From sequence record NC_061443.1: a DNA stretch of 64,000 nucleotides. One strand, 5' to 3'. The notes beneath the pieces are model-generated. The model had not been told where the DNA came from, searched no databases, and saw only the letters and a list, made by a program, of their open reading frames with translations. The translations under genes were made by a program, and so were the position numbers. Within the stretch, counting starts at the first letter, position 1. Every line of letters begins with the position of its first letter. This document shows positions 12,245-30,483 of the stretch, in pieces.

Positions 12245-13015
12245 ATGAGCAACGTTGATAAAACAATGCCACAAGGTCGCTGGGAATTTAACGAACCAGT
12301 TGCTGCTGTCTTCGATAACATGCTGCAAAATTCTATCCCCTCATACGAGCGTATGCGTGACCTGACCTATCGTCTGGGTCGTCAGTTCGTAACTCCAGGC
12401 ACAGCCATTGTTGACTTGGGTGCGTCACTTGGTCGTGCTATCGAACCGTTCTGTGCTGAGTTCGGCGAGTACATGTATCTTCACGCGGCAGATCGTCCTG
12501 AGCCAGATCGTGAAACAGGCAACCACTACTGCTGTTATGAAGTAGCGCCTGCGATGCTTGAGCGTCTGCGTCAAAATGAAGTGCTGGTCAATGCCAAAGC
12601 TAAAATCAGTAGCGAGTCACTGGTTGAAGTGGACACTTTCCGATTCGACGAGCAGGTTGAATGCTCTTTGATTCTGTCTGTGTTGACTCTCCAGTTCACA
12701 CCGATTGAACATCGCCAGCACATCCTTGAGAAGGTCTATGACAGTCTTGAGAAAGGTGGCGCGTTCATCCTCGTTGAGAAAGTGCTTGGCGACGATAACT
12801 TCCTCGACCGCCTGTTGGTTGATACCTACTACGGCATGAAAGGCAGCAACGGCTACTCGCAAGAATCTATTGCGACAAAACGTAAAGCGCTCGAAGGCGT
12901 ACTGGTTCCTGTGAAAGCCGCATGGAACGAAGAACTGTTGCGTAAAGCAGGCTTCAACCGTGTTGAGTGTTTCTATCGCGATCTGAACTTCGCTGGATGG
13001 ATTGCAGTTAAGTAA
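12245..13015 (+). CDS. cmoA: carboxy-S-adenosyl-L-methionine synthase-like SAM-dependent protein
   Basis: WEFNEPVAAVFDNMLQNSIPSY N-terminus, VDLGASLG SAM motif, LTLQF, LVEKV, KRKALEGV with the conserved CmoA Arg, FAGWIAVK C-terminus. Confidence 0.85.
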   Translation: MSNVDKTMPQGRWEFNEPVAAVFDNMLQNSIPSYERMRDLTYRLGRQFVTPGTAIVDLGASLGRAIEPFCAEFGEYMYLHAADRPEPDRETGNHYCCYEVAPAMLERLRQNEVLVNAKAKISSESLVEVDTFRFDEQVECSLILSVLTLQFTPIEHRQHILEKVYDSLEKGGAFILVEKVLGDDNFLDRLLVDTYYGMKGSNGYSQESIATKRKALEGVLVPVKAAWNEELLRKAGFNRVECFYRDLNFAGWIAVK

Positions 13016-13022
13016 CAAATGC

Positions 13023-13047
13023 GGGTGGCTTCGGCCGCCCCTTGTTG
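13023..13047 (+). terminator. hairpin with weak U tract (possible leaky terminator)
   Basis: GGGTGGC-TTCG-GCCGCCC-CTTGTTG between cmoA and next gene. Confidence 0.5.
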
Positions 13048-13062
13048 CACAGGAGATTAGCA

Positions 13063-13926
13063 ATGGCCAACAAACGCCAAGAACGTTGTGCGTCAATGAT
13101 TCGTGAGTCGTTGATTACCGAAATCAAGAAAGCACGTTCTAAACAACCCTACGTCTTCCTCAGTGGCGGCGTAGACTCAAACTGTATTCTGTTTGCTGCG
13201 CTTGAGGCAGGGTGCCGTCCAATTACCCTTTCATTCCACATGGAAGGCGTTAATAGTCGTGACTTCCGAGCGGCTCAGGCGATAGCAAAAGAGTTTGACC
13301 TTGAGCTGATTGAGGTTGTGCTGCCGAACTCTTATGAGAAACTCAAATCGGATGTGCTGCTTATGGCTGAACGTTATAAGTGTGTGCAGAAAAATGAGTT
13401 CGAATGTTCGTGGCCTATGCTCTATAGCTTCTTCCACGTTCGCAACCATGCGCGTGAGAACGGCATCAAGAACCCTGTGACCTTTACTGGCCAAGGCGCT
13501 GACTTGATGTACCTGTCTTCTAAGAAGGCTAGCATTCACTATAAAGATCGTCCTGATGTGTGGCGTAAAGAAGGTCGCGCTAATCCGCATCGTACTCAAG
13601 GACGCATCCTGCCTCTCATGGCTCGTGATGCGGGCATTCGTAATATTAAGCCTTGGGACAGTGAGGAAATTCTTCAAGCGTTTCTCGGCACGTCATGGGA
13701 AGACGTTAACAAGCCACGACAGAAAGAACCTTCTCGTGCCGCATTCGAAGATTACTTCAAACGCGTTCGAGTATTCAACCATCAGAACTTCCAGCTCGGT
13801 GATACAGGTATCGCAGAGCATTTCGAAAAGCTGTTGGCGGATTCTGAAATGAATCCAGACTTCAAATATAAAAGTGTTGTCGGCGTCTACGGAGAGCTGG
13901 CTCGCGCATACCAGGAAAAATCCTGA
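13063..13926 (+). CDS. asparagine-synthetase-like ATP-dependent amide ligase (no glutaminase domain)
   Basis: PP-loop FLSGGVDS, FTGQGAD (cf. AsnB SGEGADE), KEPSRAAF (cf. K..LR.AF); only 287 aa. Confidence 0.8.
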   Translation: MANKRQERCASMIRESLITEIKKARSKQPYVFLSGGVDSNCILFAALEAGCRPITLSFHMEGVNSRDFRAAQAIAKEFDLELIEVVLPNSYEKLKSDVLLMAERYKCVQKNEFECSWPMLYSFFHVRNHARENGIKNPVTFTGQGADLMYLSSKKASIHYKDRPDVWRKEGRANPHRTQGRILPLMARDAGIRNIKPWDSEEILQAFLGTSWEDVNKPRQKEPSRAAFEDYFKRVRVFNHQNFQLGDTGIAEHFEKLLADSEMNPDFKYKSVVGVYGELARAYQEKS

Positions 13927-14549
13927 TGACAATGATTCATATCATAGACGGTGCAGTTGGTGGCGGTTATGTTTATTCAAAGCTGGTGGATGCAGGCTTC
14001 AATGCTCGCGTACATGCGCCACCCAATCCGAGAGTTCGTGCTGCATACGCGACGTACCCATCACTTTCCATGGGTCACTCGGAGAAAGAGATTGAGCACC
14101 ATATCAGTCAGGTCTTAGGTACTTATCGAGGCCTGTTCTTGATTAGCAGTTACGTTGGTTCACTGATTGCAAACAACATGATCGACATGTGTGGTCAGTC
14201 TGAAAACGTGATCACCTGTGACGACCTCAAGTGTGGTTCCATACCGGTTGTCGCTTCCTCTATTTCTGTAAACGTATATCAGAACCAACGTAAGCTGGCG
14301 CGTATTCATCATCGCTTAAAGCACTTCGACTTCGACCACGAGTTCGCTATTGCTGATCAGGCTGTGCGATTCGCGGCAGGCGATGAATTTGCGAAACAGG
14401 GTGCGCAGCAAGAACTGAACAATCACGCTAAGTTCTTGTCCAGCCCGTCTTTGATTGTTGCCGCACACAAACTCGGTGTGAAGGGCAGCATGTATCACAA
14501 CTATGCAGGTCTGGTGCAAGAGTTCATTGAGAAGCGCCAGAAGCAATAA
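13926..14549 (+). CDS. hypothetical protein, weak likeness to Asp/Glu racemase N-terminus
   Basis: IHIIDGAVGGGYVY versus MurI IGIFDSGVGGLTV; catalytic Cys not seen; coupled to the ligase gene. Confidence 0.45.
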   Translation: MTMIHIIDGAVGGGYVYSKLVDAGFNARVHAPPNPRVRAAYATYPSLSMGHSEKEIEHHISQVLGTYRGLFLISSYVGSLIANNMIDMCGQSENVITCDDLKCGSIPVVASSISVNVYQNQRKLARIHHRLKHFDFDHEFAIADQAVRFAAGDEFAKQGAQQELNNHAKFLSSPSLIVAAHKLGVKGSMYHNYAGLVQEFIEKRQKQ

Positions 14550-14561
14550 CGCGAGGGCACG

Positions 14562-14825
14562 ATGATCAATCGCTTTCAAATGAGAAAAGTTCCTACGCTT
14601 GAAGCGTGTCAGTGGAACGGGGAGAACGTTGAGGAGATGGAGAAGTTTCTCAACGGTCATGGTTATGTCAAAGGACGTTACGTTGAGATCGGCGTGTTGG
14701 ATAAATATCAGAAGCCGACTATCGCTAACGTGTCTGTAGGCAACTACGCAGTTAAGCATGAAGACGGTTCGTTCGATGCAATAACTGCGAGTGAACTGAT
14801 GGACAAATACGTTCTGGCGGATTGA
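14562..14825 (+). CDS. hypothetical phage protein
   Basis: EACQWNGEN...GNYAVK motif common in small phage proteins; GAGG RBS. Confidence 0.65.
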   Translation: MINRFQMRKVPTLEACQWNGENVEEMEKFLNGHGYVKGRYVEIGVLDKYQKPTIANVSVGNYAVKHEDGSFDAITASELMDKYVLAD

Positions 14826-14832
14826 GGGCACA

Positions 14833-15288
14833 ATGAATCTGTTTTCTATTTTAAAGCAGCAGGTGAAGAAAGCGCTGTCTACAGAAGCTGCGCATGAGCC
14901 AGAAGTTCGTGCAATGTTTGACTGGCGCTATTCAGTTGATGTTAAAGGTCAGATGTACATCGTAGGTAAGACGGGAGCAAACACCTGCTTCTATGTCGAG
15001 CCTGGTACCGATGAACCTGTAGCGTGTTACCCAGATGCGTTACTGGCAAAGATTGACGAGTGGGGTACAGGCAAGTACGTCTCCTTCGCAATCTACTTCA
15101 AGCGTTTTGAATCTCCTGTGTTTGAAAACATCAAGACGCTTGAGAAAGCGCTGACAGGCAAACCTAAGTCATTCAAGAAAGGTTACTTCTTGTGTGGCCT
15201 GACGCCGAAAGGCAAGCGTGTGAAATTGTACCGACTGCATCAAGGACTGTCTGGTATGCAGTGGGTAGCAGTCGAACCTAAATCTTAA
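14833..15288 (+). CDS. hypothetical protein
   Basis: GAGG RBS, 151 aa. Confidence 0.6.
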   Translation: MNLFSILKQQVKKALSTEAAHEPEVRAMFDWRYSVDVKGQMYIVGKTGANTCFYVEPGTDEPVACYPDALLAKIDEWGTGKYVSFAIYFKRFESPVFENIKTLEKALTGKPKSFKKGYFLCGLTPKGKRVKLYRLHQGLSGMQWVAVEPKS

Positions 15289-15319
15289 CCGCACGGTACT
15301 GTCCGTGTTAGGAGCAAGT

Positions 15320-15610
15320 ATGATTAGCGACATTACAGTCGGTCGTATCTACAAGTCACGTGGCGATAAGCCATTTATTGTTGACTGCATTGCCGCTCAC
15401 GGACAGGATTGCTCTTTGCCTATGGTTATCTATCGTAATCTCGAAGACACGTCGGATAAACCTGCTGGCACTGTTTGGGTAATCACTGAGTCGTTGTTCG
15501 TAATGCAGTTCTCTGAGTACGAATCAGGAGAATATCATGAACACAACGAACATGCACCACCATCTATCATCAAGGGGATTCGATCCTGCATTCTACCATT
15601 GCTGGGTTAG
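15320..15610 (+). CDS. DUF1653-like SH3 protein
   Basis: GRIYKSRG..FIVDCIA.H.......MVIYRNL......VWV; AGGAG RBS. Confidence 0.7.
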   Translation: MISDITVGRIYKSRGDKPFIVDCIAAHGQDCSLPMVIYRNLEDTSDKPAGTVWVITESLFVMQFSEYESGEYHEHNEHAPPSIIKGIRSCILPLLG

Positions 15611-16053
15611 CGAAACTCAAATGACCGTGCCTCTGTTTTCGTTTGATAGAGCAATGCGCGGCCTACAGGTCTACACACCAGATGCACCAAAGCACGACAA
15701 TAACCCGAAGGCCTGCCGTTACTTCACGCGAGCATTCGGCGGCAAGCAGTTGGTGTGGGGATCGGAAATTAAACCTGAACGGGTCGACCGTGTTCTTAAC
15801 TGAGTCTGTCTTCAAGGCGTGTGCTCTGCATCGTCTTGGACTCAATGCTTGGTCCGTTCTTGGTTCAAATGTGAGTGATCATCTGTACCACCAGCTTCGA
15901 CTCTTAGGTCTACGTTTCGTTTGTCTTGGCGATGACGATAAAGCAGGACAGGAGTTTAGTCAGACGTTTGGACTAGGCGCTGTCAGCAATGACCTTGACG
16001 AGATGACTGATGAACAGCTACTCGATTTAACTTTACCGTTGCTGAGGAAATAA
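15537..16053 (+). pseudogene. Toprim primase-like gene split by a +1 frameshift near 15765-15770
   Basis: upstream frame VPLFSFD..MRGLQVY...YFT..LVWGSE; downstream frame LNLNGSTVFLTESVFKA...LGDDDKAG. Confidence 0.75.
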
Positions 16054-16054
16054 A

Positions 16055-16483
16055 ATGTCACGCGAAGTTACTGTCCGTATCATAGGACCTGTGGGTGTCG
16101 GCAAGTCTGCCGTGTACGCTACTCTGGTCAACACCCTGTCTACAATCGGCGTTAGCGTTAAACACGCAGACGAGAAAGCGTGGAAGTCTCTGGAGAACGC
16201 AGGCGAAGCGGCGATCTCTGCTGAAACGCTGAACGAACTCACGCCAGTTGTGACGTTCGAAGAAGTGGGCATTCGCACCGACGCTGCTGCCTCTCCAAAT
16301 CAGATCATGCAGTTCTTCGCGTATGCCCACCTGCCTCTGCATCTGCAAGCTGTCAGCAAACCATTCGCGCTGCTGGCACAAGAGATGGATCTTACGCTGC
16401 CTAACGGACCTGAGAAGTCTGCTGGTCTGCGTAAGTTGCTGGAAGCGAAAGACTGCATGGTACGTCAACTCGTAGCGAAGTAA
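16055..16483 (+). CDS. fusion of P-loop-like N-terminus and small helical phage domain
   Basis: IIGPVGVGKS; C-terminal QFFAYAHLP...PEKSAGLRKLLEAKDC. Confidence 0.6.
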   Translation: MSREVTVRIIGPVGVGKSAVYATLVNTLSTIGVSVKHADEKAWKSLENAGEAAISAETLNELTPVVTFEEVGIRTDAAASPNQIMQFFAYAHLPLHLQAVSKPFALLAQEMDLTLPNGPEKSAGLRKLLEAKDCMVRQLVAK

Positions 16484-16532
16484 TGGAGGCAATCATGAAC
16501 GATTGGTTCTACGGCGGTTAAGTAGTAACACC

Positions 16533-16560
16533 AAAGGGTGGCCATTAGGCTGCCCTTTTC
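16533..16560 (+). terminator. Rho-independent terminator
   Basis: AAAGGGTGGCC-ATTA-GGCTGCCC-TTTT. Confidence 0.8.
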
Positions 16561-16684
16561 TGATCTTAGACAACTAAAACAAGCCCAAAAGGATAGCATA
16601 CAGCCGTGCGTAGACAGTATAAAACCATGTGTAGGCAGCGTAGAAACACCACCTTTTTCTTGAGCAGTGGGAAGCGCTTAAAAA

Positions 16685-16693
16685 CTGTAAATA
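16685..16693 (+). promoter_or_regulatory. CTGTAAATA candidate phage promoter motif
   Basis: intergenic, before AAGGAG RBS of dam; exact copies also at 7797, 10450, 32233, 36191, 41464. Confidence 0.55.
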
Positions 16694-16711
16694 CTGATAA
16701 AGGAGACAACA

Positions 16712-17554
16712 ATGACAGTAATAAGTCCAATCCGTTATCAGGGCAATAAGCGTAGCCTTATTCCTTTTATTCTCGAACATGTGCCTGACGTGAAAGACTG
16801 TCCGCGCATGGTCGATGTGTTTGGTGGTAGCGCTACTGTCTGTGCGAATATGCCGCAGAAGTTTCGCGTCTACAACGAACTAAGTCCTCAGGTGTATGAG
16901 ATCGTTAAGATGCTTGTCGAGCAGGACCCGAAGAAAACATTGGGTCAAGTCAAGCGTCTGGTACGCCACTGGTGTCTGACGAACAGCAACGAAGAAAACT
17001 ACGATGCGTTCCGTACAGTCCTCCAGAAGAAGCGCACTGCAATCTTGCATTACGTTGCACATCGTCACGCACACTCGAACATGTTGCGCTTCAACCAACA
17101 GGGTGTGTACAACGTAGGCTTTGGTGATCGTGGTCTGATTGGTAAGTTCGATGAACTCGAACACGAACTCACCTCATTCCACCAGCACATGCAAGGCGTC
17201 CACCTGACGAACATGAAGTATGGTAAATTGCTTGGTCGTCTCGGCAATCAACTGGACTGCAACACGTTCTGCTACTTCGACCCGCCTTATCTGGCGAGTG
17301 GTGCAATGCAGTACGGCAAGTGGACCGAAGCCAATGAGCGCAATCTGCTGGCGACGCTTGAGCAACTCAATCGCTTGGGCGTACCGTGGATGTTGAGCAA
17401 TGTTATCGAACACCGAGAGTTCTCGAACGATCTGTTGAAGCGCTGGTTAAAGAAACACGCGACGACCGTGCTCTACCCAAACAAAAGCTATGCGATGAAC
17501 AACGGCCAGAGTGGCTCGCATAGTACGATTGAAATTCTGGCGATGAACTATTGA
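16712..17554 (+). CDS. dam: DNA adenine methyltransferase (D12/Dam class)
   Basis: RYQGNK, DVFGGSATV, FDPPY, WMLSN. Confidence 0.92.
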   Translation: MTVISPIRYQGNKRSLIPFILEHVPDVKDCPRMVDVFGGSATVCANMPQKFRVYNELSPQVYEIVKMLVEQDPKKTLGQVKRLVRHWCLTNSNEENYDAFRTVLQKKRTAILHYVAHRHAHSNMLRFNQQGVYNVGFGDRGLIGKFDELEHELTSFHQHMQGVHLTNMKYGKLLGRLGNQLDCNTFCYFDPPYLASGAMQYGKWTEANERNLLATLEQLNRLGVPWMLSNVIEHREFSNDLLKRWLKKHATTVLYPNKSYAMNNGQSGSHSTIEILAMNY

Positions 17555-17562
17555 GGCAAACA

Positions 17563-17874
17563 ATGCAGGGACCTGAAGGTACTAACCAAAAGCTCGTTAC
17601 CATTCTCCGTGCTGTGACGAAGGAGCTGGAGAAAATCAATAGCACTGCCTGGTATCTTTCAGGCGAAAGCAAAGATACTTGTGGTGTCATCGACCCGTTT
17701 GCTATTCCTGATTGGTCTGACGAAGGTCTGATCAAAGAAATCGAAAGACGCGAGCTCCAGATTAATGAGCGCAAGCGTTACATCGCAGGACTCAACGGTG
17801 GTGCCGACGGTCATCGCCGTACAACCGACACTCAGGCCGATGCGATCTACCAACGTTACTGTGGGAAGAACTGA
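17563..17874 (+). CDS. hypothetical protein
   Basis: GAGG RBS; coupled to next gene. Confidence 0.55.
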   Translation: MQGPEGTNQKLVTILRAVTKELEKINSTAWYLSGESKDTCGVIDPFAIPDWSDEGLIKEIERRELQINERKRYIAGLNGGADGHRRTTDTQADAIYQRYCGKN

Positions 17875-18566
17875 TGGAACAAGAAATGAAAGACATGCCA
17901 GTACATATCGTTAACGGTTTCCAGTTCAGCGATAACTCCGCGCACTTACTGTCCTATGCGCTGGACATGGCACGACTCGGCGGTACTATTGGTCCTGAGT
18001 TTTGGGAAGCTCATATCGTTGAGAACGTAGGCAAAGTGTCGTTGACCGAAACGATTATGATCAGCGGCCCGATTATTCGCGCTAAAGATTTTAGCATCTT
18101 CGACAGTATCGAGCAGTGCCGTAAAGACGCGCAAGTTGTTTTCGAATCTCTGCTGTACGGCTTCGACACGCTGATGCAGGAGTTCCGTGAAGTGCTCTTA
18201 GGCGAAGCGCCACATAAGCCGCACACCACGTTCTTGAACGGTAAGAGTTTCAGTAACGAACTGCTGTCTTACCTGTCGCGTCCCGCCGAAGAAAGCGATA
18301 TGGAATTACTGGACGTGTACCGTCGTCAGGCTTGCGGTCTGTGTGACGCCGAACCTATCCTCATGCGTCTTCGTCTGCCTGGAAATACCCAGCATCTCTG
18401 GAACGGTGAGTGGCGTGCCGTGATACGGGCGAGTGAAGAAATTCGTGCCCATCAATTCAACATGTGGTACTACAACCACGCGTTCACCAAGCATCGTATG
18501 CAGGCGCTGTCCAACTGCTACTTGTATACGAAACATGCTGAACACTTCAATCGAGGTCAATCATGA
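17874..18566 (+). CDS. hypothetical protein
   Basis: 230 aa, coupled on both sides. Confidence 0.6.
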   Translation: MEQEMKDMPVHIVNGFQFSDNSAHLLSYALDMARLGGTIGPEFWEAHIVENVGKVSLTETIMISGPIIRAKDFSIFDSIEQCRKDAQVVFESLLYGFDTLMQEFREVLLGEAPHKPHTTFLNGKSFSNELLSYLSRPAEESDMELLDVYRRQACGLCDAEPILMRLRLPGNTQHLWNGEWRAVIRASEEIRAHQFNMWYYNHAFTKHRMQALSNCYLYTKHAEHFNRGQS

Positions 18567-19039
18567 TCGGTATTAATGAACTACGCGGTCGTCTGGCTGC
18601 TGCCCTATGTTTAGAGGTGAAGACGGCACCGAATGCGGATATCGAATACTACGTTGACCCTGACGGTCTCCCCATGGGTCTGGTACAAGAATGGCGCCCT
18701 GATAGTGCTGAGAAAATCCTTCAGGTCATCGAGCAGTACGGTCTGCGTGTCGAGCGTGTTGTAAAGCCAGGACTACCGAAGCCTATCACTGCGGAAAACG
18801 TTGAGTGGGTGTATCACGTTTGGTCACGTAATCCTGTGTATCGCGGTCTGTCTGACCAAAACGTTATGCGACGCGAAGGTCCTCGTGTTGAAGGGCAAAC
18901 TTTGACTATTGCCGTATTGACCTGGGCCGTGCTTCGTGCGGAGCGTATCAAAGAACTCCAGTCATGTCCTGTGCAGTCGAAAGGCTATAACTTCAATCTG
19001 CTGCAGGAGCGTGTGTATGTATCTGCCGTTGGGGGATAA
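18563..19039 (+). CDS. phage ABA-sandwich (DUF2591/NinX)-like protein
   Basis: WRPDS...VIEQYGLRV...EGQTLTIAV pattern. Confidence 0.5.
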   Translation: MIGINELRGRLAAALCLEVKTAPNADIEYYVDPDGLPMGLVQEWRPDSAEKILQVIEQYGLRVERVVKPGLPKPITAENVEWVYHVWSRNPVYRGLSDQNVMRREGPRVEGQTLTIAVLTWAVLRAERIKELQSCPVQSKGYNFNLLQERVYVSAVGG

Positions 19040-19427
19040 AGCATCTGACGCGGAAGCACGGGCGTACTTTCAGAAACAACACGAACGTGCCGAAGCCACT
19101 ATGCGAGAAATTTGGGCGTTGCGTGGCTGGACGATTCGCTGGGAATGGCACAACGGAATCTGCGATGACTGTGAGTTCCTGTTCGATGAAACAGGCAAAC
19201 AGTTGTGCCCTTATCACGATGCCATTCCTCAAGAACGTGATGTATCGTACAACCTTGAGAAGTATCGCCTCAATGTAACGTACACCAAGAAATCTGTAAA
19301 ATTGATTAACAAGCAAGATCCCAATCCAGTTGAAGGTAAAGCCGACACGTTACGTCAGGCATATCTCAATTGGTTACTTGCGATTGAAAAGCAGAAAGCT
19401 GAGGAGAAAACGTGCGCTGCGACCTGA
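19017..19427 (+). CDS. possible second ABA-sandwich-like protein
   Basis: CAGGAG RBS; LEKYRLNV...EGKADTLRQAYL parallels preceding gene. Confidence 0.45.
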   Translation: MYLPLGDKASDAEARAYFQKQHERAEATMREIWALRGWTIRWEWHNGICDDCEFLFDETGKQLCPYHDAIPQERDVSYNLEKYRLNVTYTKKSVKLINKQDPNPVEGKADTLRQAYLNWLLAIEKQKAEEKTCAAT

Positions 19428-19933
19428 AAGACCTTCCACTGGCATTAGATCAAGCTGAACACATCCTGGCGAGCGTGTTCACTCTGGCTGCTTCCTCCAA
19501 GTCTAAGCGTCGTGCGACTGCTGCGATGTTGGTGCATTTCCACAATGGCTTCCCGATGATTCTGAGTAGTGGTGTCAACGGGACAACGCCTGGCGAAAGC
19601 AATGTGATGGAAACTCCTGACTTGACGCTTTCGCTGGACACTGTGATTCATGCAGAAGTGAATTGCTTGGACCGTCTCGAAGACTACTCACTCTGGGCAG
19701 ACTTCCGTGACGTCCTGTTCTGTACAGATTCACCGTGCCCCAACTGTCTGACCGAGCTTACTACTGCTGGCGTGAAGACCGTTGTGTATGCGCGTGAGTA
19801 TCGCCTGACTGATCATCTGGACGCATCTGATATCAAGATGTTCTGTCTGGACATGAAGTCGGTTGAGCATCGTATGCTTCGCGGCATCGAGCGTATGAAC
19901 GAAGTTATCGCAACAACGCCAGCGTCTGAATAA
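19412..19933 (+). CDS. dCMP deaminase
   Basis: SSGVNGTTPG, HAE, SPCPNC zinc motif, VVYAREY. Confidence 0.88.
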   Translation: MRCDLKDLPLALDQAEHILASVFTLAASSKSKRRATAAMLVHFHNGFPMILSSGVNGTTPGESNVMETPDLTLSLDTVIHAEVNCLDRLEDYSLWADFRDVLFCTDSPCPNCLTELTTAGVKTVVYAREYRLTDHLDASDIKMFCLDMKSVEHRMLRGIERMNEVIATTPASE

Positions 19934-19954
19934 GACCAATAAGAGGTACTAACC

Positions 19955-20623: not shown

Positions 20624-20632
20624 GGAACTATT

Positions 20633-21115: not shown

Positions 21116-21276
21116 GCAACCCGGACAATCCATTAGCAGATTACTTTAACGCTGACGCAGTTATCCCAGGTGTAGACGACGCAGAAGATCGTGTCGAAGC
21201 TATGCGTGACGGTGGCGGCGAAGTCGTTGACGAAAAAGATGCTGATGGTTGTGAAAGCGGCGCCTGCAAAATCTAA
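21112..21276 (+). CDS. 54-aa acidic peptide ending in an NrdA-type C-terminal redox tail (not in ORF track)
   Basis: MSNPDNPLADYFNADAVIPGVDDAEDRVEAMRDGGGEVVDEKDADGCESGACKI; ATGA overlap with upstream stop; fills the gap exactly. Confidence 0.8.
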   Translation: MSNPDNPLADYFNADAVIPGVDDAEDRVEAMRDGGGEVVDEKDADGCESGACKI

Positions 21277-21305
21277 TTCATGGGGCCTAGTGCCCCATTT
21301 CTGTT

Positions 21306-22448: not shown

Positions 22449-22449
22449 A

Positions 22450-23097: not shown

Positions 23098-23104
23098 GTA
23101 CGTG

Positions 23105-23419
23105 ATGTTCGTCCGTACGCGCAACAAAGAACAGACGGACGGCGTTCACATGCCAGTCATCTTCCCTACGCACATCATGCACTCTGACATGGGCGAAGCG
23201 ATGGTAGGCTACGCAATTCAGAACGGTATGATCGAAAACAAATACTACCAGCGCATGGACCCTGTCAGTGCAGGCTTCATCGATCTGAATGATTTACGTT
23301 GTTTCGGCGAGTCTGAATCTCTGGACCTCAAGTCGCGTGAGCAGGACAGTGAGATCATCCGTGAGTATATGAAGACTCAAGGCAAAGGAGCAGAGACACC
23401 GCCAGGAGACGACGCATGA
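23105..23419 (+). CDS. hypothetical protein
   Basis: VIFP..IMHSDM...PVSAGF; start uncertain. Confidence 0.55.
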   Translation: MFVRTRNKEQTDGVHMPVIFPTHIMHSDMGEAMVGYAIQNGMIENKYYQRMDPVSAGFIDLNDLRCFGESESLDLKSREQDSEIIREYMKTQGKGAETPPGDDA

Positions 23420-23904
23420 GCATTGCAGAAAAAGTCGATAGCGTTAACAGTCAACGCGAGTCTGAACGTAAGGCCAAAGAAGAAACTTTCATTGCAGCCT
23501 GCCAGGCGATCATTCCTAAAGTTTCAGCGGATATGGATGACCTGCTTCGGCAGTTCATTCACGAGAACGTTAATAGTGACCGCATCGTACTTGGAACTCC
23601 TAAGTACAGCATCTGCGATTACAAGTTCAAGCTGACTATCACCGTTGATTTTCATGAAAATCGTGACACGCAGTTCACGGTCGAGCTGGCACCTGATGGA
23701 CCGTTCACACTGATCAAAGATCGTGAGCGCCAACGTGCGTGGTTCCTGCGTGACATTACGTTCATGCCTTACGAAAACGCTCTCTCCGAAATGCTCTACC
23801 ATGCTGTGGAGAAATCATTCTCAGGCAAGGAGTGGCGTGATCGTTATGGTCCTAATCTCGGCTCAAACGATGTGATATTCTCTCACCTGTATCTGAGGTC
23901 TTAA
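23416..23904 (+). CDS. hypothetical protein
   Basis: AGGAG RBS, ATGA overlap. Confidence 0.6.
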   Translation: MSIAEKVDSVNSQRESERKAKEETFIAACQAIIPKVSADMDDLLRQFIHENVNSDRIVLGTPKYSICDYKFKLTITVDFHENRDTQFTVELAPDGPFTLIKDRERQRAWFLRDITFMPYENALSEMLYHAVEKSFSGKEWRDRYGPNLGSNDVIFSHLYLRS

Positions 23905-24284
23905 TGAAAGAGTTCCTGCTATCTATCTGGAACGCTCCATTCTGGGACGAACCGGTTAGCGCATTCGTTGTTCCTGCGATTGTCATCGGGTGGTTTGTGT
24001 GGACAGAGTATCGGGAGCGTCGTGCCTTGAAGCTGTCTCGTGCTGTGTTTGCCACAGGCTGGAACCCTGTGAAAGGCACGATGTATCGACATCGCTACCT
24101 GCCTTGGCGTAAGTGCCGCATGTGCTTTACGTCGAACAGTCCTAACGATAAGTTCATTCCGTCGGTCTTTATTGATATTGAACGTGGAGGCTTTGTAGAA
24201 CTGCCTGCACACATCTTCCGCTCTCGTTACAAAGAGATTGAAAATGCCAACTCCATTGATTCTTCTCAAACAGCAGACTCGTGA
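23904..24284 (+). CDS. membrane-anchored DUF1653-like protein
   Basis: hydrophobic segment then GTMYRHRY...FRSRY. Confidence 0.5.
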   Translation: MKEFLLSIWNAPFWDEPVSAFVVPAIVIGWFVWTEYRERRALKLSRAVFATGWNPVKGTMYRHRYLPWRKCRMCFTSNSPNDKFIPSVFIDIERGGFVELPAHIFRSRYKEIENANSIDSSQTADS

Positions 24285-24588
24285 TCTGCTGGTAAAGATG
24301 TTCGGCCAGAACAAGCCGTTCTTTGTAGTACGTCGGGACGCGATTGTTGAAGAAGGAAAGCGTTTCGGTGATCGTGTCTACTTCTCCAACGGCACTAACA
24401 CTGTTACCGTGCCAAACATTCAGGGGCTCGACCTCGGTGATAAGCTCTACATTGCAGAAGACGGCGATGTGTATGAGTGGCATCCTCACTTCGAGCGCCC
24501 GTACGAAGCAGTATCAAACAACCAGTCAGAAGCTCTGGCGTTTGGTCTGCATCCCATTGTTTTTCATACTGACAGTCGGAACAGCTAA
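24244..24588 (+). CDS. hypothetical protein
   Basis: coupled to thymidylate synthase. Confidence 0.5.
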   Translation: MPTPLILLKQQTRDLLVKMFGQNKPFFVVRRDAIVEEGKRFGDRVYFSNGTNTVTVPNIQGLDLGDKLYIAEDGDVYEWHPHFERPYEAVSNNQSEALAFGLHPIVFHTDSRNS

Positions 24589-25685
24589 TGTCACAACCAC
24601 TTGATCTACGCAATCCAAATCACTACGAACTGTACTCTATTCACAACGTGGACGAACAGTACATCAACCTGTGTGACGCTATTATCGCTACAGGCACGAA
24701 AGAGTCTGACCCTGAGCGCACCACCGACGAGTGGTTGACTATCATCGGTGTCGGCTTCCAGTTGCAGAACACGCACATCGCTTTCCCTGCGCTGCTTGGT
24801 GCACGTAAGAACTGGGTAGCGGCTGTCGATGAAATGTGTTGGATGGCTCGCGGTGAAACGAACATCGAATCCCTGAACTCTAAGATCTGGGATTTGTGGG
24901 CAGACGAATCTGGAGACTGCGGTCCTATCTACGGTGAGCAGTGGCGCCGTTGGCCTGACGTCAAAGCCTTCTTCGACTACACGCAGCCTATGGCATCTTG
25001 CCCTACTGCGGAAGTTATTCGTGCGCGTAATGAAATCCTGCGTATGCGTGAAGACGGCTACATCGAAACTGAACTGACTGATGGTCGCATTCTGTTTGAA
25101 GGTCAGATTGACCAGTTCGTTAATGCTCTGTACCAGATTCAGGCTCGCTCCCGTTCGCGCCGCATCCGTGTTCAGGCGTTCAACCCAAGCTATGTGAACA
25201 TGCAGGGTCTGCCTCCATGCCACACTGAGTTTGAGTTCAACGTAACGAAAGCTACTCGCTACGAACAAGCTCAGGCAGAAGCGCGTGGACAAGCTGTTGC
25301 CGAAGACAGCCTGCACATCACTGTCCAACTCCGTTCCAATGATTGTCTACTCGGACGCCCGTTCAACATCATGGGCTACAGCGCCATGCACCAGATGATC
25401 GCTAAGTGGGCGGGTCTAAACGTCGGCGGCTTCACGCTCAACTCTACCAACACGCATATGTATACGCACCACATCGAAGCGTATCAGACGCAACGTGCCC
25501 AGTGGATGACGCTACGCGAGCGTATGCAGAAAACGGGTGAGCCTGTTAAATACCCTGTGCTCGAAATCAGTGACGACATTCTTGGCCTGACGCCAGAGCA
25601 GTTGCTCGATAACGCGAACGCAGATTGGTTCGAGCTGGTGGACTACAATCCAATGCCAGCAGTAAAAGGACGTGTGACCAAATGA
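24588..25685 (+). CDS. thyA: thymidylate synthase (ThyA type)
   Basis: EMCWMARG, IWDLWAD..GDCGPIYGEQWR, SRRI, LPPCH, QLRSND.LLGRPFN, HMYTHH. Confidence 0.93.
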   Translation: MSQPLDLRNPNHYELYSIHNVDEQYINLCDAIIATGTKESDPERTTDEWLTIIGVGFQLQNTHIAFPALLGARKNWVAAVDEMCWMARGETNIESLNSKIWDLWADESGDCGPIYGEQWRRWPDVKAFFDYTQPMASCPTAEVIRARNEILRMREDGYIETELTDGRILFEGQIDQFVNALYQIQARSRSRRIRVQAFNPSYVNMQGLPPCHTEFEFNVTKATRYEQAQAEARGQAVAEDSLHITVQLRSNDCLLGRPFNIMGYSAMHQMIAKWAGLNVGGFTLNSTNTHMYTHHIEAYQTQRAQWMTLRERMQKTGEPVKYPVLEISDDILGLTPEQLLDNANADWFELVDYNPMPAVKGRVTK

Positions 25686-26335
25686 ACAAGAATAACATCA
25701 TGCTGATCGAACGTGTCAGCTCTTACATGTACGTCGGCTTTGCAGAAAACATCCCAGACATTCCTCGTCGTGGTGTTGAGAAGTTCGAAGTGCTGATTCC
25801 TGACGGCCGTGATGGTGAGAACGACCCGATTCTTCAAATGACGGCGCGCTGCATCTATCACCTGCCACACAACTGCTTCCTAATCAGCATTGCAGAAGGT
25901 ACCGAAGGCCACGAGTACCCTACGTTGATGAAGTCCCACTGCAAGTACAACATGGAACAGTTCCTGCGTTCTGGTCACGGCCGTGAGAAGATTGCTGTTA
26001 AGCAGATTCTGGATGAATTGCATGATGCAGAAGTGCAGCATCCTCAATGGCCAGAAGAAGCGATTCATGCTGCGTCAATCGTCACCGAAGAAGCTGGAGA
26101 GTTGCTGCGCGACTGTGCCACCTTTGAAGAAAACGGTGACCAGCGTCTGATCATTAACATGCTCGGCGAAGCTACGCAGGTCGGCGCAATGGCAGTTCGC
26201 TTTATGAAGAACCTGCCTACGTCCCAGCGTCGTACTATCCCTAACAACGCACTGCGCTCAATCCTGGATTCTGATCTAACTCCAGAGCAACAACTGATTG
26301 AAGTGCGTCGCCTGATGAATGACGGAGTTCAGTAA
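25682..26335 (+). CDS. protein with C-terminal MazG-like nucleotide pyrophosphatase domain
   Basis: IVTEEAGELL...EATQVGAMAVRF. Confidence 0.6.
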   Translation: MNKNNIMLIERVSSYMYVGFAENIPDIPRRGVEKFEVLIPDGRDGENDPILQMTARCIYHLPHNCFLISIAEGTEGHEYPTLMKSHCKYNMEQFLRSGHGREKIAVKQILDELHDAEVQHPQWPEEAIHAASIVTEEAGELLRDCATFEENGDQRLIINMLGEATQVGAMAVRFMKNLPTSQRRTIPNNALRSILDSDLTPEQQLIEVRRLMNDGVQ

Positions 26336-27225
26336 TGCGCTTACTCTCATACGGAGCATGTGGCGGTACACCCTTTCGTCGTCTGGTAGTTAAAGATGAT
26401 GGGCATTTTGAAGTCGGCGTTCATCCTAAGATTGAAGCGTTCGGCTGTGTGTTCACTAATGTTAACGTTGGTCGTATCGCTGACGACGCCGTTGAGTTCG
26501 ACCTGCCTGATTCAAGTGACTGGTCTATCGACATGGCCGACTACTTCCTGTCTCCTGAATACAAGCAGTGGGTAGGTGGTCATACTCCGCGTATCGAAAC
26601 GATGCTGGATGCGCACGTCATCAAAGGCAAGCTGCCTACTTTAGTTCAGGACTATGATGCGTTCTACGCTGACCTACAGCGGAAGATTAATGCACTCAAT
26701 CTGACTGACATTGTGTTTGAGCATAATGCGATCAAGCAGACTAACCTAAGCCAAAAGTTCGACGTGTGGATGCTGTACAAGTACAACCTGATGCTTGACG
26801 GTAAGATCTCTGTTACTCGTTCGAACGTCGGCGAGCTGGTCTTCCAGGAAGACTTCATCTCCGAAAAAGGAACCACGTGGTGGCTGCGCGAGCACAACAA
26901 AGTTCTGATGGAGCTGGCGGCACGACATGACATGCTGGCTGCATTCATTACGTTCGGCGTGTCCCACCGCAATGAGCGTGAGTTCTTCTACTCGTTCATC
27001 ACGAAGGAGGGCGATCAAACGCAGCGTCCTGTTGAGGCCTCAGAGTTCATTCATATGTCCGTTCACGGCCAGTTTCCCGAACTGGTCATCACTGATCGCG
27101 GTAAGGACTACAATCTGGCGGTCAACTATCGACAGTTCTTCCCGGAGTCCTATCACGCGCTGAAAGGTGCCGTCAACATCACAGTCGGCAGTAACTTCGC
27201 ACTGAATCTCTTGCGCTTTATCTGA
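26335..27225 (+). CDS. hypothetical protein
   Basis: 296 aa, TAATG coupling. Confidence 0.65.
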   Translation: MRLLSYGACGGTPFRRLVVKDDGHFEVGVHPKIEAFGCVFTNVNVGRIADDAVEFDLPDSSDWSIDMADYFLSPEYKQWVGGHTPRIETMLDAHVIKGKLPTLVQDYDAFYADLQRKINALNLTDIVFEHNAIKQTNLSQKFDVWMLYKYNLMLDGKISVTRSNVGELVFQEDFISEKGTTWWLREHNKVLMELAARHDMLAAFITFGVSHRNEREFFYSFITKEGDQTQRPVEASEFIHMSVHGQFPELVITDRGKDYNLAVNYRQFFPESYHALKGAVNITVGSNFALNLLRFI

Positions 27226-27231
27226 CGGCCA

Positions 27232-27269
27232 GAGTCTCTCAGTAATTTATGTTTCAACAAGGGAGACTC
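27232..27269 (+). promoter_or_regulatory. hairpin with TAATTT in loop and RBS in 3' arm
   Basis: GAGTCTCTC-agTAATTTatgtttcaacaa-GGGAGACTC, ATG at 27273. Confidence 0.6.
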
Positions 27270-27272
27270 GCC

Positions 27273-27608
27273 ATGCAATATGATAAGACGAAAGACTATC
27301 AGCCGTTCCGTTATCTGGGTACACCTAAACTACCCAGCGTAGGATTCATCGCAAGCACTGTCACACTCGTCGAGAATGAAGTTCTAATCGGCCATGACGA
27401 GTGTGAGTTCGTGTTCACTGTGGAGCAGATGAATACTATGGACAGAGGTACCGTAACGTTCCGTGCGAAAGATATGGGCGGCGGTATCACGATAAAGAAA
27501 TGCTCCGTCTCTGGATTGAAAATGGTAATTAAGCTGGAACGACGTGTTGTGCAGTACGGCAAAGTTCAAGTCGAATGGCACTCCACCAGCCGTAAATATC
27601 TTTATTAA
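27273..27608 (+). CDS. hypothetical beta-rich protein
   Basis: GGGAG RBS. Confidence 0.6.
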   Translation: MQYDKTKDYQPFRYLGTPKLPSVGFIASTVTLVENEVLIGHDECEFVFTVEQMNTMDRGTVTFRAKDMGGGITIKKCSVSGLKMVIKLERRVVQYGKVQVEWHSTSRKYLY

Positions 27609-27650
27609 TCTGTAAAGACAGAGAAAGAGCAACCACAAGAGATACGACTA

Positions 27651-28352
27651 ATGGCAAAAATTGCTAAAACAAAGGAAGGGAAAAAGAGCCACGCGATGAA
27701 GATTGACTTGACGAAATTCAAGACAGCTTCACAACTGAAAGGCGCTGACTATAACCCACGCTTCATTACAGATAGCCGACTTAAAGCACTCGAAAGTTCT
27801 TTGGGTAGCTTCGGCGATTTGTCTGGTATCGTGTTCAACAACAGCGTGAAGTCTGGCGTTCTTGTCTCTGGCCACCAGCGTTTGAAATCCATTGACGGGT
27901 GGAAGACGCGTATTGAAATTCAGAAGACGACTGATAAGTACGGCACTATCGGTCTGGGCTACATCCACGCAACGCATCCGAAGAAGCCTGAGAAGGTTAT
28001 CAGTATCCCGCTTCGTATCGTTAACTGGACGGACAAGAAAACCGAGTATGCTGCGAACATCGCGGCGAACGCTCATGGCGGTGAGTTCGATAACAAGAAA
28101 CTCGCCAAGCTGGTTGAGAAGCTGGACTTGACAACTATCAAGCCACAGTTGCTTGGCCTTGACCCGTTAGAAATTCGTGGGCTGCAACAAAAGCTGAAAG
28201 GTCAGGCTGCCGTTGTCACTCAAGAGCGAGCAGGTAAGACTACAGGCCAGATGAACGGCAGTAGTGGTTCGTTCAAAGAGTACGGCACTGACGAAGTTGG
28301 TGAGAGCCTGAACTGCACCTGCCCGCGTTGTGGATTTAAGTTCGAGGGATAA
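27651..28352 (+). CDS. ParB/sulfiredoxin-like domain protein with C-terminal zinc ribbon
   Basis: DYNPR, FGDLSGIVFN, VSGHQRLK, ANIAANAHGGEFD, CTCPRCGFKF. Confidence 0.8.
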   Translation: MAKIAKTKEGKKSHAMKIDLTKFKTASQLKGADYNPRFITDSRLKALESSLGSFGDLSGIVFNNSVKSGVLVSGHQRLKSIDGWKTRIEIQKTTDKYGTIGLGYIHATHPKKPEKVISIPLRIVNWTDKKTEYAANIAANAHGGEFDNKKLAKLVEKLDLTTIKPQLLGLDPLEIRGLQQKLKGQAAVVTQERAGKTTGQMNGSSGSFKEYGTDEVGESLNCTCPRCGFKFEG

Positions 28353-28353
28353 T

Positions 28354-30483
28354 ATGATCATCAAGCCGCCTACGATGAAGGAAATCAACAAGCTGGATAA
28401 ACCCTGGCGTGGTATGAGTTTCTTCGCAGGTTGCGGTGGGTCTTCTACCGGCCACAAGATGGCCGGTATCAACATCCTGTTGAGTAACGAGTTCGTGGAC
28501 TCTGCCCGCGAATCCTATGAAGCGAATCACCCAACCACAAAAGTGCTGCCGCATGATATTCGTCGTCTGGACCCAAGCAAGCTCATGCGTTATTGCGGGC
28601 TGGCAAAAGGCGAACTGGATTTACTTGACGGCAGTCCTCCATGCTTTACCGAAGACACCATCATTCATACAGCAGACGGCATGAAGTTCATCTCGGACAT
28701 GAATGTCGGCGATCAAGCAATGACCTCAGTCGGTCGTTACTTCCCTGTGTACGATACAATGGTTCGTCCATACGTCGGCACAATGCACAAAGTCGAAACG
28801 CTGTTGGGCGCAAATAACGCAACGCCTGAGCATCCATTCTTCGTAAGACGTAACACTGCTCCTGGTGAGTACGGCGAACCGTTCTGGTGTGATGCGAAAG
28901 ACGTGCAGGAAGGTGATCTGGTCGGTACTCCACGCACGACTCCTGATATGGGTCTTGCTGTGTACGAAGACCAGCTGGCTCAACTGCCTAAGCAGATCGC
29001 CGAGTGGGTAGTGTTCCCTGAGTTCTGGTGGATGATTGGTCACTGGTGCGACCGTGGTTCGATTGAAACTGTTAGCGGCGTTGAAGTCGTTAGCTTTGAA
29101 TCTCATTCCAGCCTTGAGAACGCAATGATTGAGCAGTCGTTTGACGCGCTTAAAATCAGTAGCCTGAATCGTATCGACACAAAGACAGCACAACGCAAAA
29201 CGTTCCGTATCGTTATGGACGCAGAGCTGGTGCAGTTCTTACGTCGCTTCGTGTCTCAAGGTAACAATCGTTTCTCTCGCCGTCTGCCTGCAATGATCTT
29301 TCACTTGTCGCCTGAGTTGAAGCAACAATTCATCTTAGGCTGCGCTGGTCATGACTACGTGACTGCGATGGGCGCTAGTCTGTCTATCACATCAGAGAGC
29401 CGTCGCTTCCTGATTGAGATGAACTACCTGTGCTGTTCAGCGTTCAACAGACCTCTGTTTGACGGACTGATTTGGGGCGACGTTTACTTCGGTAGCTCCA
29501 TGACTCCTCGTGAGCGCAACAGTGCCAAGCCTCTTATTGGCTATTTGTTCCTGCAGGACGAGCCGCATTACTTCTTCGAGTTCTCTGATACTGATCCTCA
29601 CATCTGGGTTGAAGTAATTGAGAACCTCGCGTATCAGGCAACCTGTGACGTGTACAACTTCTCCGTTGAGACGGACGAGACATACGTTGCAAACAGCGTG
29701 GTCGTTCACAACTGCAAAGGTTTCTCTACTGCTGGTGTGAAGGAAGAAGGCTGGGGCAAAGAGGTGAAGTACAGCGACAACAAGTATCAGCAGGTAGATG
29801 ACCTGTTCGATCAGTATTGTCGTATGCTGGGCGGGATGCAGCCGAAAGTGTTCACTGCGGAAAACGTTAGCGGCCTCGTTAAAGGTGCGTCGAAAGGCTA
29901 CTTCCTTGAAATCATGAAGGAGTTCGACAAGCTGGGCTACTACGTCCGGGCGCCAATGCTTAATGCTGCGTGGCTTGGTGTGCCTCAGTCTCGTGAGCGT
30001 ATCATCTTTATGGGTGTACGCAAAGACGTTGCCCATGCGCTTGGATATAAGACGGCTGCTACTGCTGTGCCTGACGTTGTACCGTGTGACAGCATGGCGT
30101 TTCTTGCCGATGCTCTGCCGAACATCCTGCGTTACAAATCAACGAAGAAAGATATCATCACGTATCTTCCTGCGATGAACGGTCCGATGCCTACGATTAC
30201 TGCCGCCGATGCGATTGCATACGAGACTGCGCGTTTCTCGTCTGCTGGCTTCGTCGAAGATAACAAAGGTCATCGACGCAAGCTGACTATTGATGAACTC
30301 AAAGTTATCTCTGGGCTGCCGTCAGACTACAAACTGAAAGGCAAGTTCGAAGAACAGTGGGAACGTCTTGGTCGTATCTGTGTGCCTGCAATGACACACG
30401 CTGCGGCTAAAGCGTTAATCGAACACGTCCTGATTCCTTATGCGAAGAAGCGTAAGAAGAAGCCTGGCGATATCTTTAAGTAA
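28354..30483 (+). CDS. C5-cytosine methyltransferase homologue, predicted DNA carboxymethyltransferase, intein-containing
   Basis: motif I FFAGCGGSS, motif IV GSPP-C, VI ENVSGL, VIII QSRERI, IX RKLTIDE, motif X WERLGRICVP (Arg for canonical Asn). Confidence 0.85.
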   Translation: MIIKPPTMKEINKLDKPWRGMSFFAGCGGSSTGHKMAGINILLSNEFVDSARESYEANHPTTKVLPHDIRRLDPSKLMRYCGLAKGELDLLDGSPPCFTEDTIIHTADGMKFISDMNVGDQAMTSVGRYFPVYDTMVRPYVGTMHKVETLLGANNATPEHPFFVRRNTAPGEYGEPFWCDAKDVQEGDLVGTPRTTPDMGLAVYEDQLAQLPKQIAEWVVFPEFWWMIGHWCDRGSIETVSGVEVVSFESHSSLENAMIEQSFDALKISSLNRIDTKTAQRKTFRIVMDAELVQFLRRFVSQGNNRFSRRLPAMIFHLSPELKQQFILGCAGHDYVTAMGASLSITSESRRFLIEMNYLCCSAFNRPLFDGLIWGDVYFGSSMTPRERNSAKPLIGYLFLQDEPHYFFEFSDTDPHIWVEVIENLAYQATCDVYNFSVETDETYVANSVVVHNCKGFSTAGVKEEGWGKEVKYSDNKYQQVDDLFDQYCRMLGGMQPKVFTAENVSGLVKGASKGYFLEIMKEFDKLGYYVRAPMLNAAWLGVPQSRERIIFMGVRKDVAHALGYKTAATAVPDVVPCDSMAFLADALPNILRYKSTKKDIITYLPAMNGPMPTITAADAIAYETARFSSAGFVEDNKGHRRKLTIDELKVISGLPSDYKLKGKFEEQWERLGRICVPAMTHAAAKALIEHVLIPYAKKRKKKPGDIFK
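28642..29712 (+). mobile_element. intein (357 aa) with degenerate LAGLIDADG endonuclease
   Basis: starts CFTEDT, block B ATPEHPF, ends VYNFSVETDETYVANSVVVHN followed by Cys; endonuclease helices read MIGHWCDRGS and FILGCAGHD. Confidence 0.92.

Follow-up and report, generated by a model that had tools for sequence, protein, structure and literature searches.

The locus and its published precedent

What is the role of a CmoA-like gene, named a tRNA methyltransferase in its database record, that stands beside an amide ligase gene and upstream of an interrupted DNA cytosine methylase gene in a phage genome? The question is raised by Erwinia phage pEa_SNUABM_2 (MZ443786.1 / NC_061443.1), an Alexandravirus jumbo phage of 265,442 bp, whose bases 1–64000 (64,000 nucleotides, hereafter the window) were analysed here. 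A sequence-only reading of this DNA had proposed a system for cytosine carboxymethylation and amidation, made up of a CmoA-like gene (12245–13015), an adjacent AsnB-like ligase lacking a glutaminase domain (13063–13926) and an intein-split homologue of C5-methyltransferases with an altered motif X (28354–30483), and it had pointed to a precedent from a cyanophage. Each of the three genes proved to be what it had been taken for, the precedent exists, and homology to all three of the enzymes tested there argues for the proposed chemistry. We consider it highly probable that pEa_SNUABM_2 encodes a post-replicative pathway of the CmoA/CmoX/CmoY type, in which gp016 would provide carboxy-S-adenosylmethionine (carboxy-SAM), spliced gp045 would carboxymethylate cytosines and gp017 would amidate the product.

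Megablast of positions 12000–31500 gave 100% identity at the same coordinates in NC_061443.1, and window coordinates are thus record coordinates; its relatives comprise phage records from Erwinia (46), Dickeya (2) and Yersinia (1). The open reading frames of the three core genes agree with the RefSeq coding sequences of NC_061443.1, where gp016 is named 'tRNA methyltransferase', gp017, gp018 and gp045 'hypothetical protein', and gp044 'ParB-like partition protein'. All genes of the system lie on the plus strand and none contains a stop or a frameshift. Counts for the clade (51 records) come from tblastn searches with the CmoA, ligase, C-extein and intein sequences. Judged on sequence, the E-values and the co-occurrence of the genes of the system are far beyond chance.

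The precedent is the system of Synechococcus phage S-B43 (Yang et al., Nat Commun 2025, PMC12783734; published in December 2025). There, CmoA (SpCmoA) produces carboxy-SAM (Cx-SAM), and CmoX (SpCmoX), which is unable to use S-adenosylmethionine (SAM), writes 5-carboxymethylcytosine (5cxmC) at GC sites. CmoY (SpCmoY), supplied with adenosine triphosphate (ATP) and glycine, acts in vitro on 5cxmC in DNA to form 5-glycylcarboxymethylcytosine (5gcxmC), and the virion DNA contains the glycine amide, with no 5-carboxymethyl-2'-deoxycytidine (5cxmdC) left. Of these two, 5cxmdC was reported at m/z 286.1 and the amide with glycine at m/z 343.1. Candidate CmoX proteins were recognised by an SPPC motif and by an arginine (Arg350 of SpCmoX), which binds the Cx-SAM carboxyl group and replaces Asn304 of M.HhaI; 5,615 such proteins were reported, often accompanied by CmoA, by ligases of several clusters that form adenosine monophosphate, and by ParBc proteins. 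Similarity clusters of the ligases were drawn with an edge threshold of 1e-56, and the cluster of SpCmoY carries a glycine-carboxylate pocket. As questions left open, the authors named the target motifs, the part played by ParBc and the variety of amide adducts (all PMC12783734). The S-B43 locus retrieved by us agrees in its gene coordinates with the source data of that paper.

gp045 resembles a DNA cytosine carboxymethyltransferase

The putative writer gene, gp045 (28354–30483), encodes a precursor of 709 amino acids, a predicted CmoX homologue in which a C5 DNA methylase domain (PF00145, E 2.6e-38) is split by Hint/intein domains. This protein was always compared either as the unedited precursor or as separate pieces, and the exteins were never joined. 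The N-extein (residues 1–96, 28354–28641) is the SAM-binding half, ends in S-P-P and aligns with residues 22–99 of the SpCmoX structure 8YF3. The C-extein (residues 454–709, 29713–30483) holds the catalytic cysteine, the target-recognition region and an arginine-bearing motif X, and aligns with residues 105–220 and 308–369 of 8YF3. When the unedited precursor was compared with all PDB sequences, 8YF3 was matched at E 6.6e-54 and the next enzyme, M.HaeIII, at 1.4e-16, so the lead of SpCmoX over the next solved relative amounts to about 37 orders of magnitude.

The altered motif X could be located precisely: Arg674 of the precursor aligns with chain residue 350 of 8YF3, that is, with R350 of SpCmoX, and stands at the position which PMC12783734 equates with Asn304 of M.HhaI. 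We examined the surrounding residues in an alignment of six sequences, namely the unedited precursors of pEa_SNUABM_2 and three divergent relatives, and the intein-less proteins of phages PaBG and S-B43. S94-P95-P96, C454 and G673-R674 are invariant in this alignment. Among the 120 closest long homologues, which formed our homologue set for the writer, SPPC is present in all 120 and G-R at motif X in 114. Identity of the C-extein is 76–100% across the clade, 46% to PaBG and 31% to S-B43. Thus gp045 has both of the features by which CmoX proteins were defined, the SPPC motif and the arginine equivalent to R350.

The engineered enzyme M.MpeI N374K is comparable in that a basic residue at the asparagine position of motif X permits the use of carboxy-SAM (PMC12783734). 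In contrast to gp045, it belongs to another subfamily of C5 methylases and is CpG-specific, and M.MpeI (4DKJ) matches gp045 only at E 2e-4. The target-recognition region of gp045 differs in length from that of SpCmoX, and therefore GC specificity cannot be assumed for the pEa_SNUABM_2 writer.

Proteins of the CmoX type, with SPPC and G-R, were also seen on bacterial chromosomes or metagenome-assembled genomes, for example P0148 from Azospirillum sp. TSA6c (7.6-Mb contig). In Staphylococcus phage vB-SscS-F1 (MW589261.1, 39041–41559), a cmoA-like gene, an AsnB-like ligase gene and a C5 methylase gene are consecutive. The methylase differs in type from SpCmoX: M.MpeI and M.HhaI are its best PDB matches, a single proline precedes its catalytic cysteine and, by eye, Gly-Gly is found at the site of the Gly-Arg of gp045. 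Transferases that use carboxy-SAM may thus include a second class, of which this would be an example and which the published filter for SPPC and arginine would miss.

An intein precedes the catalytic cysteine of the writer

The two exteins are separated by an intein of 357 amino acids (residues 97–453, 28642–29712), which lies directly before the catalytic cysteine and was delimited by the six-sequence alignment; it is matched by the Hint_2, Intein_splicing and TIGR01443 models. The last of these, a model of intein C-termini, scored 23.7 bits with a cut-off of 15.6. In the intein-less writers of PaBG and S-B43 the sequence continues across this site without a break, and 89 of the 120 homologues likewise lack additional residues there. 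Cys454 is at once the +1 residue of splicing and the catalytic cysteine. According to the predicted mechanism, the intein would excise itself and join S-P-P to Cys454, which would create the SPPC catalytic loop of a transferase of about 352 amino acids.

The insertion lies between S-P-P and the remainder of the catalytic motif, and no homing-endonuclease domain was recognised in the central 231 amino acids of the intein (Pfam, E ≤ 5; PDB). Both observations would suit a gene that has become a relic, whose intein no longer splices and which yields no active transferase, with cmoA and the ligase as leftovers. We find this barely credible, since in each of the 51 clade records, all of which contain the intein, the frame is open, and since the splicing blocks (the first cysteine, Thr-x-x-His, and the terminal His-Asn followed by cysteine) are kept in four divergent copies that are only 36–63% identical. 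The ratio of nonsynonymous to synonymous substitutions (dN/dS) tells against decay as well. Synonymous sites were saturated against distant relatives, so the ratio was recomputed with close ones (dS 0.35–1.0); it is 0–0.10 for the exteins, 0.06–0.10 for the intein and 0.05–0.07 for the central 224 amino acids of the intein. Moreover, the N-extein is 100% identical to those of phages Alexandra and SNUABM_35, although synonymous divergence among these three phages is 0.35–0.43. The whole gp045 precursor, intein included, is under purifying selection.

The site is also occupied elsewhere. Among the 120 homologues, 31 protein clusters carry an insertion of 171–393 residues at the same position, and some of the insertion-bearing proteins are only 35–53% identical in the C-extein. 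The insertions of P0065 (506 amino acids) and P0062 (602 amino acids) at the catalytic-cysteine site are shorter, 171 and 259 residues, respectively, which is consistent with mini-inteins devoid of the central domain. With an intein fixed at its catalytic cysteine, the writer is a clear case from nature of a modifying enzyme whose activity would depend on protein splicing.

gp016 is a CmoA homologue

The gene gp016 (12245–13015) encodes a predicted carboxy-SAM synthase. It matches TIGR00740, the equivalog model of CmoA, at E 7.8e-43 (146.9 bits) and the E. coli CmoA structure 4GEK at E 6e-31 over residues 11–256, that is, over the full length; 4IWN and 1IM8 follow in the PDB search, where the nearest methyltransferase other than CmoA is matched at 3.5e-7. 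Identity to SpCmoA is 30% (E 2e-29), and across all 51 clade records CmoA is 75–100% identical to gp016. The active site of CmoA is a hydrophobic pocket, and the literature consulted gives no residue-level signature for it. We conclude that gp016 is a full-length CmoA homologue, for which synthesis of Cx-SAM is predicted by homology.

Genes of the two loci belong to one system

The sequence-only reading had placed the system in two loci about 14 kb apart. The distance from the stop codon of the ligase gene (13926) to the start of the ParB-like gene (27651) is 13.7 kb, and cmoA and cmoX are 15.3 kb apart. Elsewhere the same genes adjoin one another. In S-B43, cmoA, cmoY and cmoX are consecutive, and in Pseudomonas jumbo phage PaBG (NC_022096.1, 125896–130473) a ParB-like gene, an intein-less cmoX, cmoA, a gene for a 150-amino-acid protein, the ligase gene and a gene for a 203-amino-acid protein follow each other. 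As the genes are contiguous in PaBG, the two loci of pEa_SNUABM_2 belong together.

The PaBG cluster is the closest system outside the clade, with identities of 45% for the ParB-like protein, 46% for the CmoX C-extein, 42% for CmoA, 43–44% for the ligase and 34% for a homologue of gp020. The order of the ParB-like gene and cmoX is shared with pEa_SNUABM_2. On the other hand, all PaBG genes are contiguous, the writer has no intein, and no relationship to gp018 could be detected for the 203-amino-acid gene that follows the ligase. The split layout is conserved as far as Yersinia phage fHe-Yen9-02 and metagenomic jumbo-phage contigs. As to the co-occurrence of the three families among related phages, CmoA, the ligase and the C-extein were found together, along with the intein, in all 51 clade records.

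The ParB-like gene, gp044 (27651–28352), ends one base upstream of cmoX, the junction reading TAAtATG, and its product has a cysteine-rich C-terminal tail. It matches phrog_620 (PHROG 620) at E 2.5e-31 and is 45% identical to the ParB-like protein that adjoins PaBG cmoX. In more distant relatives of gp044, ParB-nuclease domains are found at or within phage DNA methylase genes.

The linkage bears on a different explanation, in which gp016 is an auxiliary metabolic gene boosting uridine-5-oxyacetic acid at position 34 (cmo5U34) of host tRNA, gp045 a conventional methylase that forms 5-methylcytosine and gp017 an amidotransferase without connection to the other two. The RefSeq name of gp016 agrees with it, CmoA is best known from tRNA modification, and in pEa_SNUABM_2 the cmoA and writer genes are split between two loci. 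Indeed, the CmoA/CmoB pathway of E. coli employs the same family of carboxy-SAM synthases; the acceptor enzyme of pEa_SNUABM_2, however, is a homologue of DNA C5 methylases. The genome of pEa_SNUABM_2 is devoid of tRNA genes, and none of the annotations in its record names a CmoB-like gene, the latter being a weak negative from an annotation-level search, as most genes are 'hypothetical'; both weigh against a tRNA role. In addition, gp045 has arginine in place of the asparagine of SAM-using enzymes, SpCmoX cannot use SAM, and in PaBG and S-B43 the genes stand side by side. We therefore judge the tRNA explanation very unlikely.

gp017, a predicted adenylating amide ligase

The product of gp017 (13063–13926) is a predicted CmoY-like, ATP-dependent adenylating amide ligase. 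It has 287 amino acids and corresponds to the synthetase half of asparagine synthetase only (Pfam Asn_synthase, 5.4e-9); Pfam and NCBIfam matches are confined to the synthetase part, and no glutaminase domain was found by these scans. Matches to QueC, NAD synthase and LarE all fall on a single N-terminal nucleotide-binding stretch. Over 240 residues, the protein shares 34% identity with SpCmoY (E 8e-37); its identity to the PaBG ligase is 43–44%.

The fold was assessed with an AlphaFold2 model (predicted local distance difference test score, pLDDT, 92). In a Foldseek search, the best matches were beta-lactam synthetase, AsnB, human ASNS and carbapenam synthetase (TMq 0.62–0.72, E to 1.4e-10), and all four adenylate a carboxylate before the amide is formed. 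On homology and the modelled fold, we assign gp017 to the AsnB-type adenylating ligases without a glutaminase domain, as a homologue of CmoY. By analogy, the amine to be joined would be glycine or another small amine or amino acid. Since gp017 lies outside the threshold of the SpCmoY cluster, the glycine specificity of the latter is not transferable to it.

The ligase gene as an apparent replaceable module

Comparison with close relatives showed that the ligase occupies an exchangeable stretch (13016–13937, plus strand), which extends from the cmoA stop codon to the start of gp018 and has no DNA homology to the siblings. In blastn comparisons with Alexandra, AD1, Y3 and SNUABM_3, homology stops at 13015 in all four cases and restarts at 13938–14091. 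The slot measures 0.9 kb in pEa_SNUABM_2, and 1.94, 2.0, 2.07 and 4.27 kb in the four siblings. The ligase type of pEa_SNUABM_2 (85–100% identity) occurs in 11 records. Other types are much more distant from gp017: 53% identity in the Yersinia phage, 43–44% in PaBG, about 35% in Y3 and Yoloswag, and 24–26% in Alexandra. Ligase identity does not track CmoA identity: Alexandra has a CmoA of 97% and a ligase of 25% identity, whereas SNUABM_5 has a CmoA of 75% and a ligase of 85%. It seems from these comparisons that the ligase is a discrete replaceable module between the fixed flanks cmoA and gp018.

Some siblings have further genes in the slot. A DUF1611 gene (P-loop and Rossmann-like) is present in Alexandra, AD1 and SNUABM_3; SNUABM_3 also encodes an alanine-racemase-like protein and a protein of 420 amino acids, and Y3 a 2-oxoglutarate-Fe(II) oxygenase. 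In the retrieved sibling loci these extra enzymes lie at L004 1858–2913, L005 1516–2571, L007 1534–4759 and L006 3095–3733. The layouts are thus the ligase alone, the ligase with DUF1611, the ligase with DUF1611, the alanine-racemase-like gene and the 420-amino-acid gene, and the ligase with the oxygenase. Provision or tailoring of the appended group is a possible role of these extra enzymes. At about 13021–13041, just past the cmoA stop codon at the left breakpoint of the module, lies a GC-rich hairpin with a stem of 7 bp and a loop of 4 bases; it was not called a terminator in our scan, as it has no T-run.

The independent exchange of this module, relative to cmoA and cmoX, would be compatible with a ligase that works off the DNA, for example by amidating carboxy-SAM or a small metabolite. 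The pathway would then end at, or branch after, 5-carboxymethylcytosine, and the final base would be the free acid or carry a preformed group. No DNA-binding domain was detected in gp017 by Pfam and NCBIfam scans, its identity to SpCmoY is only 34%, and it lies outside the cluster threshold for that enzyme. Nevertheless, the homologue SpCmoY, which matches gp017 in size and architecture, uses 5cxmC in DNA as its substrate in vitro, and S-B43 virions are free of 5cxmdC. Furthermore, in three phage lineages unrelated to one another, ligase homologues are neighbours of cmoA and a gene for a C5-transferase. We regard a ligase acting off the DNA as improbable, and amidation of carboxymethylated DNA by gp017 as the preferred reading.

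At least three ligase types, unrelated to each other, and four module layouts occupy one slot in near-identical phages on one host species. A tentative explanation, to which we give slightly less than an even chance, is that jumbo phages of Erwinia, Dickeya and Yersinia swap ligase modules while keeping the same 5-carboxymethylcytosine handle, so that a different amine is attached in each lineage. Host defence would drive this combinatorial cassette, and pEa_SNUABM_2, with its minimal module, would write an amide other than that of glycine. Such near-identical phages with differing modules form a ready comparative panel for module chemistry.

Proposed pathway and points that weigh against it

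In the pathway that we propose, gp016 would convert SAM and host prephenate to carboxy-SAM. Spliced gp045 would hold carboxy-SAM through Arg674 and transfer the carboxymethyl group onto C5 of cytosine in a short motif of double-stranded phage DNA. gp017 would then adenylate the carboxyl group with ATP and condense it with an amine, which would give an amide-linked hypermodified base. gp044, translationally coupled to the writer, probably aids DNA engagement, and further roles may fall to two conserved candidates, gp020 and the ligase-coupled gp018. The likely benefit is the shielding of phage DNA from host restriction.

Several observations weigh against this pathway. The writer would be inactive unless its intein splices, and splicing is predicted from sequence. 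The distance of gp017 from SpCmoY is considerable, E 8e-37 being weaker than the 1e-56 cluster edge of PMC12783734 and identity being only 34%. The two loci are 13.7 kb apart, and promoter and terminator scans, made to look for operon structure, remained at chance level. The score of gp016 is below the NCBIfam equivalog cut-off of TIGR00740 (193.3 bits). However, the biochemically verified SpCmoA scores 115.6 bits, lower than gp016, and PaBG CmoA 130.5 bits; the cut-off thus excludes active phage enzymes and is uninformative for them. gp044 has no Pfam match, ParBc PF02195 included (E ≤ 5), and no PDB match (E ≤ 1), so the ParB-like partner named in the sequence-only reading is upheld by phrog_620 and by its PaBG counterpart, and not by the ParBc model of Pfam. 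Finally, the searchable literature contains no chemical or sequencing evidence of modified DNA for pEa_SNUABM_2 or its relatives.

How far does the system depart from that of S-B43? All three enzyme families are present in both phages, SPPC and the arginine at the R350 position are kept, and the two ligases, similar in length (287 amino acids in pEa_SNUABM_2, 271 in SpCmoY), are both devoid of a glutaminase domain. Unlike S-B43, pEa_SNUABM_2 has a 357-amino-acid intein at the catalytic cysteine of the writer and two loci instead of one three-gene block, and identity is only 30–34% (31% for the C-extein). The view that the arrangement is a distinct variant holds in part: the intein and the split layout are real traits of the clade, but they leave the chemistry unchanged, and both a ParBc-type partner, a frequent companion of the writer, and diverse glutaminase-less ligases had already been reported in PMC12783734. 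We conclude that this is a new, mis-annotated member of the CmoA/CmoX/CmoY kind and not a new kind. The intein, the pEa_SNUABM_2 clade and PaBG were not found in PMC12783734 or its text supplements. New here are the occupation of the same intein site in 31 protein clusters and the exchange of ligase modules between near-identical phages, the latter absent from the analyses reported in that paper.

The proposed pathway also resembles the phage hypermodification systems based on 5-hydroxymethyl-2'-deoxyuridine and 5-hydroxymethyl-2'-deoxycytidine, in which a reactive handle is placed on C5 of a pyrimidine and then decorated, with appended groups that are diverse among related phages (PMC12783734, Discussion). 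In contrast to these, the handle of pEa_SNUABM_2 would, by analogy with S-B43, be a carboxyl group donated by carboxy-SAM to finished DNA, and the decoration an ATP-dependent amide. The CmoA/CmoX/CmoY pathway has so far been demonstrated in a single cyanophage. The present analysis places the system in at least 51 sequenced phage records, in cultured jumbo phages of plant-pathogen hosts, under the names 'tRNA methyltransferase' and 'hypothetical protein'. DNA modified in such a way can withstand restriction enzymes and distort sequencing signals.

Companion and neighbouring genes

The start codon of gp018 (13926–14549, plus strand; 207 amino acids) overlaps the ligase stop codon (TGATG). This candidate accessory gene follows every ligase type, with 58–75% identity. 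An exhaustive profile search of 1.84 billion proteins found only 6 representatives of the family, none with a named relative; gp018 has no Pfam domain, and its family profile has no PDB match. The model of gp018 is of low confidence (pLDDT 62) and showed a weak Foldseek likeness to glutamate racemases and arylmalonate decarboxylase (E 5e-3 or weaker). A racemase or decarboxylase role is a weak lead only, unsupported by the family profile against PDB, by Pfam and by the exhaustive profile search. Equivalence of gp018 with PaBG gp305, the 203-amino-acid gene after the ligase, was ruled out (BLAST E 0.039 over 14 residues, hhalign probability 9%).

A second candidate accessory gene, gp020 (14833–15288, plus strand; 151 amino acids; phrog_23597), is homologous to PaBG gp307, the 150-amino-acid gene between cmoA and the ligase (34% identity, E 1e-25). 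Its family occurs in exactly the 53 system-bearing records (the clade and PaBG). A correspondence of gp042 with PaBG gp311 was considered as well, and no similarity was found.

An additional gene without assigned function had been counted in the system by the sequence-only reading; gp018, and also gp020, are the better candidates for such a gene than the variable open reading frame downstream of cmoX. The stretch 30484–31189 is variable, with homology to pEa_SNUABM_30 lost from about 30498; RefSeq has two smaller genes in place of the 249-amino-acid open reading frame at 30440–31189, which gave no family matches. It is unlikely to be part of the system.

Between the loci lie genes for a D12-class N6-adenine DNA methyltransferase (16712–17554) and a deoxycytidine monophosphate (dCMP) deaminase (19412–19933), both syntenic in distant relatives; going by the former, pEa_SNUABM_2 DNA probably carries N6-methyladenine as well. 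A thymidylate-synthase homologue of 365 amino acids (24588–25685) is about 100 amino acids longer than ThyA owing to internal insertions. We considered it as a dCMP hydroxymethylase, which would constitute a competing cytosine pathway, and ruled this out, as the catalytic cysteine and the asparagine typical of enzymes acting on deoxyuridine monophosphate (dUMP) align with E. coli ThyA. Its predicted product is thymidylate (dTMP) or hydroxymethyl-dUMP, which are indistinguishable by sequence alone. A nucleoside triphosphate pyrophosphohydrolase and a metal-dependent phosphohydrolase are annotated at 36795–38300, and a beta-1,4-glycosyltransferase is annotated outside the window, at 111053–112297 of NC_061443.1.

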